Assembly (NCBI RefSeq): GCF_006345805.1
Contig: NC_043000.1
Location: 40,796,001-40,860,000 of the forward strand
DNA: 64,000 bases
Direction: 5' to 3'
DNA from: Octopus sinensis
Lineage: Eukaryota
Shown here: piece by piece, positions 22,354 to 34,806 of the stretch
Position numbering within the stretch: the first letter of the stretch is position 1
Layout of the letters: every line of letters begins with the position of its first letter
Program-made: the position numbers and the translations under genes
Notes under the pieces: model-generated
Told to the model about the DNA's origin: nothing
Database searches by the model: none
Seen by the model: the letters and a program-made list of their open reading frames with translations, nothing else

Positions 22354-24259
22354 CTAGGAATTCTTATATATAGAGATACCCTTTAATTATATGAAAATTA
22401 TACTGTTTCATGAATATCTGTTTCATGAATATTCCAAAATTTTCACAAGTATCAACAAACGTTTGGGTGAGTGCTTCAACTTCTTTCCGTTTCATTTGTT
22501 TAAATAGATTAAACACATTTTACCGGATAATATCTGGAGAGTGTGACGATGTGATATATAATCCAGCCAAACATTTAAATGTTTTTTGTCTTAATTACCA
22601 AACTCCCTCTCCGAAATACCTACATAAACATTCAACCTAAAATATGTTTACATCTAAAACGTCATGTGATGTATATGATTTTAACTTCGTAAGATATCTT
22701 GCCGATTAAGTTGAACATATCTTACATATCTTATAAAAGATATGTAACAAGTTTTCTTTGTTTTAGGTTTAAGGGTTCTCCTTAATATGAGTAAACGTAC
22801 ATCTATAAATGAACTATTGGCTGCAGATTTCGTCAAAACAGCTGACTATAAGTTTACATCGTGAATTGGTAGAATATAACCATGTCATCTCACAAGACAG
22901 TTCTCTTCAGCACACTCCTTACAAAGTCAAGGTCATTTCCTTCTTTTCATCTAAGATGCGTAAAATGCTGGAAGGAGATGATACGTGTGTGTATGTGTGC
23001 ATGTATATATACATGTGCATATATATAAATTTTTTCCGAATTTATGTGAATGTGTATAGAATAATATATCTGTTGAATAAAGTTAAAACATGGTCTGGTT
23101 TTCATATTTTCTTATTATGGTATTTTAACATTAAAAGAATATTTTGTAATGTATATAAAGATCAATTAGTACTTTCATACGTTTGTAGTTATCATCAGAT
23201 TTCAAAATGTATTTAATTGACAGTTTAGTTCTTGACAACTGTAGTATTTCTTAGAACGCTCCAACAAGCTAAAGTTTTGGAATACGGTTTTGACCAATCC
23301 GCATGCAGCTTGGTCGTGTTTGTGTGTGGTGTGTGTGTGTGTGTGTGTGTGTGTGTGTGTGTGTGTATGTGTGTGTGTGTGTGTTTGTGTGTATTTGATC
23401 TTGTTTTTTACAGTACAAAACTTAAGTGAAAAGGAATTTCGGTGATTTTTTGTTGCACATAATTTTAAATGTTCACTGAGAGGAATCTGTCCAGTATTAG
23501 GATTTCGTATTCGTTGCCTATGAATTATTAATTGAATTTAAATTATTGTTATTCGAATTGGTTACGGGTATGAAACGATCTTAGTGTTTTTACTCTTTAT
23601 CTTATTGATACTTTTTGATAGTTTAAAAAAATATATATATAAATATAAAAATATAAAAATATAAAATAAATAAATAAAAAATATAAATAAAAATAAAAAT
23701 ATAAAAAAATAAATAATTAAATAAAATAATAATAAATATATATATATTTATAATTTATAAGTTTAAATTATTATTTAAGTAATTTTTTAAAATTTTAACT
23801 TTAATTTAAATATTTTAATTGGATTTTTATATATTTATATTTTATATTTTTTTAATATTTTTTAAAATTAATGTTATTGCTATGTATTGGCTTATGATTT
23901 TCACTATTTGATTTGTCTAGTAGTGGTTTTATCTCTAATTTAATAATAATATATATATATATATATATACTATATATATATATATATATATATATAATAT
24001 ATATATATATATATGTATGTATGTGTGTGTATATGTTTGAGTATCTGTGTTTGTCCCCTAACATCGCTTGACAAATGATGCTGGTGTGTTTACGTCCCCG
24101 TAACCTAGCGGTTCGGCAAATAAGACCGATAGAATAAGTACTAGGCTTACAAAGAATAAGTCCTGGGGTCTATTTGCTCGACTAAAGGCGGTGCTTCAGC
24201 ATGGCCGCAGTCAAATGACTGAAACAAGCAAAAGAGTAAGAGAGTAAAGAGTAACTTAC

Positions 24260-24301
24260 TTTTGGCGACTTTAGGGTTAAAAGGTGTATCGTCGGAACTG
24301 G
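24260..24301 (-). CDS. Repeat exon copy A (42 nt), xSSDDTPFNPKVAK
   Basis: Long pyrimidine tract then ag; donor gtaagt; homologous to copies B-F. Confidence 0.8.
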
Positions 24302-25753
24302 CTAAAAAGGGCAAAAGAAAAAGAAAAGAAACAAAATATTTTTATTGAATTTATAAGAAATACTTTTTCACTAGTTGAAAGATCTGGTGTATGCCTATTG
24401 AGCGGATCCCTATATGGTAGCGTACTGGAAATCACACCGCTACCATATTAAAATAAAGATAAACTAGTTCACGTAAATCTTGATATAACTGGCTGGCTCA
24501 TTTTATAACAATTGACCTTTATGAAGTCAAGGCCATATTCTCTTTTTTTATCTAAGGTGCGTAAAATGCTGGAAGAAGATAATACGTGTGTGTATGTGTG
24601 TATGTATATATACATGTGCATATATATATATATATTCCGAATTTGTTCGAATGTATATAGAATGATATATCAGTTAAAACATGGCCTGGTTTTCACCTTT
24701 TGTATTATGGTATTTTAACATTAAAAGATCATTTGTAATGTATATAAAGATCAATTAGTGCTTTCATAAGTTCTTAGTAATCATCACATTTCGAAATGTA
24801 TTTAATTGACAGTTTAGTTCTTGACAACTGTAACACCTCTTCGAACACTCCAAGCTAACGATTTGGTTTACGGTTTTGACCAATCCGCATGCAGCTTGGT
24901 CGTGCGTGTGTTTGTGTGTGCGTGCGTGTGTGTGTGTATTTGATCTTGTTTTTTTATAGAACAAAAATTAAGTGAGAGGGAATTTCGGTGATTTTTTGTT
25001 GCTCATAAGTTTAAATGTTCACTGAGAGGAATCTGTCTAGTATTAGAAACTCGTATTTGTTGCCTATGAATACTGAGTCTGTTTCTCAAAATCTCGTTTG
25101 ACTTTTGTAATTTTCGTTGCAACGACTACATTTAATAGGATAAAATGCAGTCTTTGATGAAAACGTGAAATTATTTTTACAATGAAAGTTGTTTTTAAGC
25201 ATAAATTTACGCACACATACACACACGCATGCATATGTATGTTTACCAACATAGGCGCAGGAGTGGCTGTGTGGTAAATAGCTTGCTTACTAACCACATG
25301 GTTCCAGGTTCAGTCGCAATGCGTAGCACCTTGGGCAAGTGTCTTCTGCTATAGCCCCGGGCCGACCAAAGCCTTGTGAGTAGATTTGGTATACGGAAAC
25401 TGAAAGAAGCTCGTCATATATATGTATATATATATATATATATATATATATATATATATATATATATATATATATATATGTGTGTGTGTGTGTGTGTGTG
25501 TGTGTGTGGTGTGTGTGTGTGGGTATGCTTTTGTGTCTGTGTTTGTCCCCCCAACATCACTTGACAACCGATGCTGGTGTGTTTACGTCCCCGTAACTTA
25601 ACGGAACGGCAAAAGAGACAGAGAGAATAAGTACTAGGCTTACAAAGAATAATCCTGGGGTCGATTTGCTCGACTAAAGGCGGTGCTTCAACATGGCCGC
25701 AGTCAAATGACTGAAACAAGCAAAAGAGTAAAAGAGAGTAAATAGTAACTTAC

Positions 25754-25795
25754 CGAAAGCGGCTTCAGGGTTAAATCCTGTATCGACGAAACTAG
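25754..25795 (-). CDS. Repeat exon copy B (42 nt), xSFVDTGFNPEAAF
   Basis: Acceptor tttcttttaccattttcag, donor gtaagt. Confidence 0.85.
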
Positions 25796-26190
25796 CTGAA
25801 AATGGTAAAAGAAAAAGAAAAGAAATAAAATATTTTTTTAAAGTAAAGACTACATTTATTGAATTAATAAGAAATACTTTTTCACTAGTTGAAAGATCTG
25901 GTGTATGCCTATTGAGCGGATCCCTATATGGTAGCGTACTGGAAATCACATCGCTACCATATTAAAATAAAGATAAACTAGTTCATGTAGATCTTGATGT
26001 AACTGGCTGACTCGTTTTATAACTATTGACCTTTATGAAGTCAAGGCCATATTCTCTTTTTTATCTAAGGTGCGTAAAATGCTGGAAGAAGATGATACGT
26101 GTGTGTATGTGTGTATGTATATATACATGTGCATATATATATATATTTATATATATATATATATATATATATATATATATATATATATAT

Positions 26191-32513: not shown

Positions 32514-32555
32514 TTAAAGTGGCTTCGGGGTGAAAAGCTGTATCGTTGGAACTAG
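32514..32555 (-). CDS. Repeat exon copy E (42 nt), xSSNDTAFHPEATL
   Basis: Same acceptor and donor; NDT sequon. Confidence 0.85.
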   Translation of the reverse strand, partial: LVPTIQLFTPKPL

Positions 32556-33628
32556 CTGAAAATGGTAAAAGAAAAAGAAAAGAAACAAAACGTTTTTTAA
32601 AGTAAAGACTACAATTATTGAATTAATAAGAAATACTTTTTCACTAGTTGAAGTTAGACGTTCAGGTGTATACCCATTGATTGAATCCCTATATGGTAGC
32701 GTCCTGGAAATCACATTCCTGCCATATTAAAATAAAGATAAAGTAGTCCATGGAGATTTGGTATAACTGGCTGTCTCGTTTTATAGCGATGACCTTATGG
32801 AGTCAAGGCCATATTCTTTTTTCTTCTAAGATGTGTAAAAAGCTGGAAGATGATGCGTTTGTGTATGTGTGTATGTATATATACATGTGCATGTAATATA
32901 TATATATATATATATATATATATATATTCCGAATTTGTGTGAATGTGTGTAGAATAATATAACAGCTGAATAAAGTTAAAACATGGCCTACTTTTCACCT
33001 TTTTTATTATGGTATTTTAACATTAAAAGATCATTTGTAATGTATATAAAGATCAATTAGTGCTTTCATAAGTTCTTAGTAATCATCACATTTCAAAATG
33101 TATTTAATTAACAGTTAAGTTCCTGAGAACTGTAACACCTCTTCGAACACTCCAAGCTAACGATTTGGTATACGGTTTGGACCAATCCGCAAGCAGCTTG
33201 TTTGTGCGCATGTGCGTGTGTGTATGTGTGTGTGTGTGTGTGTATTTGATCTTGTTTTTTACAGAACAAAAGTTAAGTGAGAAGGAATTTTGGTGATTTT
33301 TTGTTGCCCATAATTTTAGATGTTCACTTAGCGGAATCTGTCTAGTATTAGGATCCCGTATTTGTTGACATACATACATACATACATGCTGAGTCTGTTT
33401 CTTAAAATCTCGTATGTCTTGCAATTTTCGTTACAGCCACTATATTAAATAGCATAAAATATATTCTTTGATGAACACGTGAAATTATTTTTACAGTGAA
33501 ATTTGTTTTTAAGCATAAATTTACGCACACATACACACACGCATACATACATACATACATACATACATACATACATACATACATACATACATACATACAT
33601 ACATACATACATATATTTACCAACTTAC

Positions 33629-33670
33629 TTAAAGCGGCTTCAGGGTGAAAAGCTGTATCGTTGGAACTAG
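33629..33670 (-). CDS. Repeat exon copy F (42 nt), xSSNDTAFHPEAAL
   Basis: Same acceptor and donor; NDT sequon. Confidence 0.85.
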   Translation of the reverse strand, partial: LVPTIQLFTLKPL

Positions 33671-34806
33671 CTGAAAATGGTAAAAGAAAAAGAAAAGAAA
33701 CAAAACGTTTTTTAAAGTAAAGACTACAATTATTGAATTAATAAGACATATTTATTCACTAGCTGAAGTTAGAAGTTCAGGTGTATGCCTATTGAGCGAA
33801 TCCCTATAAGGCAGCGTACTAGAAATCATAGCCCTATCATATTAAAATAAAGATAAACTAGTTCATGTAGATCTTGATATACTGAAAGAAAAAAAATACG
33901 GGATAATTATAGGTGGAAGCCTATGTGATCTTAGATGTACTTCATCAGGACTAAACTGCGATTAAACAAAAACAACATCAACAGTAACAACAACAACAAC
34001 AACAACTGTGCCAGCAACAACAACAGCTATGACAACAACTATGATAATAACCATGACAAAAATACAAGCATGAGTCTATTATACTATAGGGAGAGAGGGT
34101 ATATAGTCGGATAGATCAGAACAAATAAATATATGTTGCTTTGTACTAGTGTGTGGTTGCGTGCACATGTGCAGTGCGTGTGTGTATGGGTGTGCAATGT
34201 CGTCTTTCTACAAATTGGTGTTTTCGTTAGTAGACCGGGTTTGTATCTGGAAGTGGATGAAAGAATACAAAACATCCTTCTATCGAAATATATTTCCACA
34301 TTATCCTAATATGGACACAAAGCATTTCTTTGTCTCGTGGTCTAACTTATGACATTTTTAAAAACAAAGTCATCCTGTCTTGTCAATATACTTTGGTTAA
34401 AATGTCTCACCAATGATATAAATATTGTCTATCTGTCTATCTATTTATCTATCTATCTATCTATCTATCTATCTATCTATCTATCTATCTATCTATCTAT
34501 CTATCTATCTATCTATCTATCTATCTATCTGTCTATCACATTTATTTGTGTGTTTGAGTATGTGTGTGCGTATGTGTTTGTGCTTTGATCCTCCCCTCGT
34601 AACAACCAGTAGTGGTTTGTTTGCGCTCCTGTAACTTAGCGGCAGGGCCAAAGAAATCGACTAAAGTAGCAGACTTAAAAACAGATAATAATTACTGGTG
34701 TTCATTTGTTCAATAAAGCCCTCTAGAGTGGGGTCCCAACATGGTCGCAGTCCAATGATTGAAAGAAATGAAAGATAAAAAATAAATGATTTGTATATCA
34801 ACTTAC

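Follow-up and report, generated by a model that had tools for sequence, protein, structure and literature searches.

Serially spliced arrays of repeat exons are found in the PEVK exons of titin, the super-repeats of nebulin, and the P exons of avian fast troponin T, where the exons are short and symmetric, their copy number varies between lineages, and their inclusion is often variable. Under Patthy's exon-shuffling rule for extracellular modules, modular genes are built from phase 1-1 exons. According to a survey of 2002, as cited by Ivanov & Pervouchine (2022, PMC9013439), tandem exon duplication occurs in about 10% of animal genes. We analyzed a stretch of 64,000 nucleotides (nt) from Octopus sinensis (NCBI RefSeq assembly GCF_006345805.1, contig NC_043000.1, positions 40,796,001 to 40,860,000 of the forward strand), referred to here as the window, and describe within it an array of six tandem copies of a 42-nt exon that likely belongs to a minus-strand gene restricted to the octopus lineage.

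The six exon copies are all encoded on the minus strand, and each of their peptides is matched exactly once in the window (Table 1). Every copy consists of 2 nt, 13 codons, and 1 nt (phase 1-1) and is free of stop codons. The acceptor is a near-identical long polypyrimidine tract followed by CAG in copies 1 to 5 and by TAG in copy 6, and the donor is GTAAGT in all six. The encoded module of 14 residues follows the consensus T/A-x-x-x-D-T-x-F-x-P-x-x-x-x; its D-T-x-F-x-P core, identical in every copy, is too short to be separated statistically from chance, and an N-D-T sequon is present in copies 1 and 2 only. BLAST comparison of unit 1 with the window reveals homology from 33881 to 22917, equal to ~6.0 periods of 1115 bp. 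Whole units are 79-96% identical, with homology extending beyond the exon into the introns, and the exon copies themselves are mutually 69-95% identical at the nucleotide level. Successive exons are spaced 1115, 1106, 2013, 3641, and 1494 bp apart: units 1 and 2 measure 1115 and 1106 bp, and the remaining units have been enlarged by later insertions. Because the homology spans the whole unit rather than the exon alone, the array exons represent a segmental duplication and not convergence, and we regard their origin by tandem duplication as nearly certain. The locus combines adjacent homologous exons in one gene, intron homology, and retained splice signals and frame, by which tandem exon duplication is recognized.

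Most of this anatomy had been anticipated by an original prediction made from the DNA letters, which left the strand unstated: six variant copies of a 42-nt exon between 22905 and 33881, tandem amplification of the unit that carries them, conservation of splice sites and exon length despite nearby insertions, an invariant DT.F.P core, and the NDT sequon in only two copies. Our data agree on each point, with homology limits of 22917 and 33881. The ~1.1-kb unit that it proposed holds for the basic unit, but not for the units swollen by insertions, where the spacing reaches up to 3641 bp.

To place the array in its gene, we draw on an exon scan of the minus strand for open segments between a pyrimidine-rich YAG acceptor and a GTRAG donor, which preceded the discovery of any homologue. 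Run on both strands as a control, the scan returned 15 candidates of phase 1-1 and of a length divisible by three (3n), every one of them on the minus strand, a pattern beyond chance. The scan candidates, which also include the two 39-nt exon copies of Table 1, all share phase 1-1, a 3n length, and a GTAAGT donor. Searching with the six array peptides alone gave no protein match at E≤0.01 (word search, 5.8 billion sequences), since lone 14-residue matches cannot attain significance against that many sequences. The virtual translation of all candidate exons, by comparison, matched one protein (E=8e-71), the 307-residue CAI9721792.1 / A0AA36F281, described as 'Hypothetical predicted protein [Octopus vulgaris]'. 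Its sequence runs from the 150-nt exon through PQLFGRFASGEN and ASKAANATTEHEM to four array modules, and then through the 48- and 42-nt exons to a terminal exon, so that the 150-, 48-, and 42-nt flanking exons were predicted from their signals first and confirmed by this protein afterwards. The four array modules follow one another in frame with the predicted junction codons, as RVDDTAFNPEADL-T-RVDDTAFNPDAAL-T-SFVDTGFNPEAAF-A-SSDDTPFNPKVAK.

The corresponding O. vulgaris locus (L001; assembly GCA_951406725.2, chromosome OX597817.1) aligns to positions 11525-64000 of the window in reverse orientation, with 1.5% substitutions (641/42516), close to the heterozygosity of 1.22% reported for O. vulgaris (PMC10700109), as expected of the species itself or of a very close relative. 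Rebuilt on L001, the gene model comprises 16 coding exons, and each of its junctions is a canonical AG/GT. The 14 internal exons (66, 114, 30, 30, 33, 150, 39, 42, four times 42, 48, and 42 nt) are without exception 3n long and of phase 1-1, and all window exons spliced serially, duplicates included, yield a single open frame with the same stop. The annotation of the O. vulgaris reference combined Iso-Seq, RNA-seq, PASA, and EVM (PMC10700109), and the orthologue of CAI9721792.1 spans all six copies. We infer the splicing of each copy from this annotation rather than from reads, and on these grounds the six segments are quite probably symmetric (phase 1-1) coding exons that are spliced into the transcript.

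The number of array copies differs between the two genomes, with six in the window and five in the O. vulgaris reference. Alignment of exons with their flanks pairs copies 1, 3, 4, 5, and 6 of the window with O. vulgaris copies V1, V2, V3, V4, and V5, respectively, and leaves copy 2 unpaired; likewise, positions 83183-84574 of L001 are matched twice by the window. Unit 2 is chimeric. Its upstream flank (-212 to about -43) is 1.7% different from unit 3 versus 12.8% from unit 1, and the last ~40 nt of its intron, its exon, and its entire downstream intron are like those of unit 1 (2% different), placing the junction ~40-80 nt upstream of the exon. Such a structure is what an unequal crossover would produce if units 1 and 3 exchanged sequence at a point shortly before the exon. 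A reciprocal deletion in the reference lineage gives the same picture, and gain and loss are not polarized without an outgroup. Units 3 and 4 differ at 1 of 145 positions upstream and at 10% downstream, which suggests that an exchange again took place near the exon. Copy number thus varies between two near-identical genomes, six versus five at 1.5% divergence.

With a 3n length, phase 1-1, and its own acceptor and donor on each exon, any number of copies can be spliced serially without a change of frame. The single annotated isoform joins four of the five O. vulgaris copies and skips copy 1 (V1); the omission of a copy with good signals makes variable inclusion possible. The part of the protein encoded in the window is rich in Ala, Thr, Asn, Ser, and Asp, with an isoelectric point of 5.3, a grand average of hydropathy of -0.6, and ten N-x-S/T sequons, and a Pfam scan of the protein finds no domain. 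We propose that the ~1.1-kb intron-exon-intron unit would have been amplified stepwise through unequal crossing-over of misaligned units, with microsatellites and retroelements entering individual units afterwards, and that the copies would serve as additive 14-residue modules extending an acidic, Ala/Thr/Asn/Ser-rich, low-complexity region. The array would still be changing, as the six copies against five in the O. vulgaris reference suggest. Additive use of the copies is likely, in agreement with the original prediction, which had listed additive modules among its options, and with the four consecutive in-frame copies of CAI9721792.1. The array probably lengthens a low-complexity segment in steps of 14 residues, and this segment is probably disordered; we infer both additivity and disorder. 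The account as a whole, in which the array belongs to a minus-strand, lineage-restricted octopus gene orthologous to that of CAI9721792.1 / A0AA36F281, is the one we favor, with moderate confidence.

Several observations weigh against this account. The annotated isoform omits copy 1, even though its splice signals match those of the others in quality, and the sole expression support is one automated model, which is 5'-truncated and whose terminal exon has a weak acceptor. Protein database searches retrieve the array exons from no other octopus annotation. HMMER, run exhaustively against 1.84 billion representative proteins, returned only the protein itself and one weak repeat match, and thus no credible homologue. 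Furthermore, with proportions of non-synonymous and synonymous differences (pN and pS) about equal, the paralogues are not conserved strongly enough to demonstrate purifying selection, and the retention of frame and of splice sites over this divergence is individually non-significant.

We then consider how the copies diverged, comparing exons ungapped because gapped pairwise alignment created false gaps inside the exon. Alignment of all six exons gives 23 variable columns out of 42, compared with 45 of 206 columns of the upstream 212 nt (p=3e-5), and 18 of the 23 variable exon columns carry a variant unique to one copy. Units 5 and 6 are sisters, because both carry the insertion of a short interspersed nuclear element (SINE)-like repeat at the identical site, 12 nt downstream of the exon donor (Table 1 for unit 5; 23949-24252 for unit 6). 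Their exons differ at 13 of 42 positions versus 15 of 257 in flanks that include this shared, presumably neutral insertion (p=1e-5), and by the Nei-Gojobori method the pair shows ~8.8 non-synonymous and ~2.2 synonymous differences. These numbers would fit a generator of protein diversity, in which variably included cassette exons are kept different by diversifying selection and yield a repertoire of proteins; so would the absence of the intact copy 1 from the annotated isoform and the symmetric phase, which permits any combination of copies. However, pN is close to pS (0.2-0.3) in nearly all pairs, with only ~8.7 synonymous sites. Cleanly aligned unit columns are overall 43% variable (228/527, exon columns included), and some intron blocks are higher, so that the exon excess holds only against conserved or homogenized immediate flanks. 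Whole-unit alignment is unreliable in the microsatellite-rich 400 nt that follow each exon, where blocks of 59-85% variability are partly misalignment. Exon 1 differs from copies 3 to 6 by 17-21%, similar to the 16-21% divergence of its downstream intron, and a single isoform is on record. Orthologous exons of the window and O. vulgaris differ at only 1 of 210 sites, which argues against current rapid change of the exons.

The possibility of diversification raised by the original prediction therefore stands as far as the exon varies more than its immediate flanks, and it does not extend to pN and pS or to the near-identical orthologues. The evidence for diversifying selection is suggestive; that such selection played any role is doubtful to unlikely, and the full repertoire-generating arrangement is unlikely. 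A combinatorial diversity system on a larger scale, in which the array and the other duplicated exons give many isoforms of an octopus-specific secreted or surface protein and copy number is polymorphic in populations, is quite improbable. Under the additive account, the sequence divergence would be due mainly to the weak constraint under which the module's outer positions evolve, possibly with a burst of change, which may have been adaptive, after the duplication that produced units 5 and 6.

Another reading takes the locus for transcribed noise or a noncoding RNA and its open frame for an artifact of open reading frame (ORF) calling on a spliced transcript, whose amplified segments, exons or not, would have no function in a protein. 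The gene is an orphan with no domain or signal peptide found and a truncated start, its composition is of low complexity, other cephalopod protein sets in the database have no match, and the evolution of the exons looks neutral. These features would be expected of such a transcript, but the exon lengths would not. Counting the array once leaves eleven independent internal exons, for which the chance of all being 3n is ~(1/3)^11, and all are open in the same phase. An ORF caller cannot dictate exon lengths, which makes these lengths the strongest internal evidence for a meaningful frame. In addition, three further unannotated candidates have the same phase and donor on the same strand, with none on the other strand, and the D-T-x-F-x-P core is kept in all copies. 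We therefore hold the noise reading to be improbable. On the question of secretion, the lack of a known signal peptide goes back to the missing 5' end; the model's ATG is internal to the first copy of a 66-nt exon (9967-10034 of L001), from which we conclude that the model is 5'-truncated, and a search of the 10 kb upstream in L001 found no signal-peptide exon.

Extra copies could also reflect misassembly of a repeat or of two haplotypes. Copy 2 is ~2% different from copy 1 downstream, and the window contains a second duplication with a unit of ~2.6-2.9 kb, absent from O. vulgaris, whose copies are 95.6-97.3% identical including gaps, with one part showing 3 mismatches in 1277 nt; both divergences are near the haplotype divergence and the divergence between window and reference given above. 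The second duplication could accordingly be very recent or a haplotype-derived assembly duplication. For the array, the case is different: an independent, chromosome-level O. vulgaris assembly has five copies at the orthologous position. The array taken as a whole is therefore no assembly expansion, which was one of the outcomes that the original prediction had listed as refuting it. The paralogues are 10-20% different, copy 2 is a clean recombinant and carries exon substitutions of its own, and no runs of N occur in the window. Doubt is confined at most to copy 2 and the second duplication, and we consider an assembly artifact very unlikely.

A mutually exclusive cluster like those of Dscam or tropomyosin, in which each transcript carries exactly one copy, is extremely unlikely: such clusters usually originate from tandemly duplicated exons of equal length (PMC9013439), but the annotated coding sequence joins four copies consecutively, so that the copies are not mutually exclusive, double inclusion of 42 nt keeps the frame, introns of at least 1.06 kb leave no steric exclusion, and a k-mer test for docking/selector pairing found no complementarity between flanking introns and units beyond chance, the complementary 10-12-mers being few, AT-rich, and at about chance frequency (a general search for inverted repeats was dominated by (TA)n tracts and by pairs of SINEs).

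Table 1. Positions in the window of the array, of other exons of the host gene, and of repeats inserted into array units
Feature	Position	Strand	Basis or remark
Tandem array, ~6.0 units of a 1115-bp intron-exon-intron unit	22917..33881	minus	BLAST of unit 1 against the window and multiple alignment of units
Array exon 1, 42 nt, phase 1-1, SSNDTAFHPEAAL	33629..33670	minus	O. vulgaris orthologue V1 identical, outside the annotated isoform
Array exon 2, 42 nt, SSNDTAFHPEATL	32514..32555	minus	Extra copy without counterpart in the O. vulgaris reference; unit chimeric
Array exon 3, 42 nt, RVGDTAFNPEADL; O. vulgaris version RVDDTAFNPEADL	31408..31449	minus	Part of protein CAI9721792.1
Array exon 4, 42 nt, RVDDTAFNPDAAL	29395..29436	minus	Part of O. 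vulgaris protein
Array exon 5, 42 nt, SFVDTGFNPEAAF	25754..25795	minus	Part of O. vulgaris protein
Array exon 6, 42 nt, SSDDTPFNPKVAK	24260..24301	minus	Part of O. vulgaris protein
Upstream exon, 150 nt, phase 1-1, THTNHAAHANGTAHANSTASKNDTSHTGPMKGTTHAKGSAAAKDSADTK	47753..47902	minus	Scan, then O. vulgaris protein
Downstream exon, 48 nt, phase 1-1, LNSIKDEADTAIAEN	21583..21630	minus	Scan, then O. vulgaris protein
Downstream exon, 42 nt, phase 1-1, TTNSSTNEAAKTD	20369..20410	minus	Scan, then O. vulgaris protein
Terminal coding exon in the O. vulgaris model (EIGVDGKW...NAFVL, stop)	19967..20094	minus	Weak acceptor
Second tandem duplication, ~2.6-2.9-kb unit	38514..43971 (38514-41124 versus 41070-43971)	minus	Window only
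39-nt exon, PQLFGRFASGEN, two copies	43828-43866 and 40982-41020	minus	Single copy in O. vulgaris
42-nt exon, ASKAANATTEHEM, two copies	41989-42030 and 39426-39467	minus	Single copy in O. vulgaris
(TA)n microsatellite, 745 bp	30318..31063		Enlarges unit 3
Penelope-like retroelement fragment	26070..27724	plus, antisense to gene	Pfam: weak RVT_1 (E=0.0016) and GIY-YIG (E=3e-5)
Dispersed SINE-like repeat, 12 nt past the exon 5 donor	25236..25746	minus	

The growth of individual units can be traced to particular insertions. The retroelement fragment of unit 4 sits in an insertion of ~2.6 kb (about 26170-28807) that O. vulgaris carries as well, and the SINE-like repeat of units 5 and 6 has at least eight further copies elsewhere in the window. 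A short ORF resembling a GIY-YIG tail in the basic unit (23205-23537, minus strand) is without Pfam support. Directly upstream of exon 4, a 36-nt tandem duplication (29450-29525; 2.1 copies, 97% identical) repeats the branch-point and polypyrimidine region in both genomes, leaving this exon with two candidate 3' splice-site regions. Outside the array, an intact non-long terminal repeat (non-LTR) retrotransposon ORF of 1148 residues with Exo_endo_phos, RVT_1, and zf-RVT domains occupies 58727-62173 on the plus strand. It is associated with a long interspersed nuclear element (LINE) insertion at about 58821-62656, within a (CTAT)n microsatellite in an intron of the gene, and has ~56% guanine plus cytosine (GC) against a background of 35%; the orthologous O. 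vulgaris site is without the insertion, which indicates that the LINE is very recent and possibly active.

The gene has at least three separate exon-bearing duplications: the array, the unit with the 39- and 42-nt exons, and the 66-nt exon, which is found twice in L001, at 9967-10034 and 15218-15283, separated by about 5.2 kb. Both copies of the 39-nt exon in the window carry a GTAAGT donor versus GTACGT in O. vulgaris (75539-75577 of L001), a difference in splice-site strength. We also observe three candidate exons on the minus strand outside the O. vulgaris model, at 62780-62812 (33 nt), 13562-13591 (30 nt), and 1556-1594 (39 nt), each of phase 1-1, with a good acceptor and with GTAAGT as donor. 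L001 carries identical sequences for the first two (at 61516 and 103565), and the third falls past its end. The candidates at 13562-13591 and 1556-1594 lie downstream of the model's stop, so that the gene may reach further 3' than annotated, and the terminal exon of the model, with its weak acceptor, may be an alternative end.

The weak HMMER match mentioned above (P0002, E=4e-4), which carries ~24 copies of TEDKAAINPEVDLRx and a Trypsin_2 domain, was set aside and is not regarded as homologous, as it is metagenomic, is encoded by a single exon, and shows no similarity at the DNA level. Its intronless ORF of 708 residues (35% GC) lies at 3001-5127 of ENA ERZ25072999 contig ctg317878 (L002; 247,572 bp). 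The 15-residue unit resembles the octopus module (DDTAFNPEADLTR), with a trypsin-like domain following the ~24 tandem copies, and the resemblance may reflect convergence or a distant relationship.

A literature search found no paper on tandem exon duplication in cephalopods. As in the tandem exon duplications described for animal genes (PMC9013439), the octopus array is a local segmental duplication that includes flanking intron and keeps splice sites and frame. It differs in comprising six very short (42-nt) exons, in their probable serial use rather than substitution, in belonging to an orphan gene, and in an exon copy number that differs between two near-identical genomes. Mutually exclusive clusters such as those of Dscam1, Mhc, 14-3-3 zeta, and tropomyosin (PMC9013439, PMC6071210) share with it a tandem-duplication origin and equal exon length, whereas the octopus model has four copies together, a 3n length, long introns, and no docking/selector pairing found. 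Genes built from phase 1-1 modules are similar in that all internal exons are of phase 1-1 and modules can be freely inserted, duplicated, and skipped; here, however, the modules are low-complexity peptides of 10-50 residues and not folded domains, in a protein for which no signal peptide or domain was found. The arrays of titin, nebulin, and troponin T resemble it in that short symmetric tandem exons each extend a low-complexity or disordered segment by one peptide module. The octopus gene has no sequence relationship to them, its protein is small, and its amplification is so recent that homology along whole introns persists. The locus is a further case of the serial short symmetric exon arrays known in repetitive proteins and involves no new mechanism. 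What sets it apart is its recency, a copy-number difference at 1.5% divergence, and an orphan host gene made only of phase 1-1 exons. The growth of a gene by exon amplification is seen here in progress, with whole-intron homology still visible and a recombinant unit marking the unequal crossover. For asking how new exon copies enter the mRNA and how fast they diverge, this orphan gene of a cephalopod could be a tractable case.

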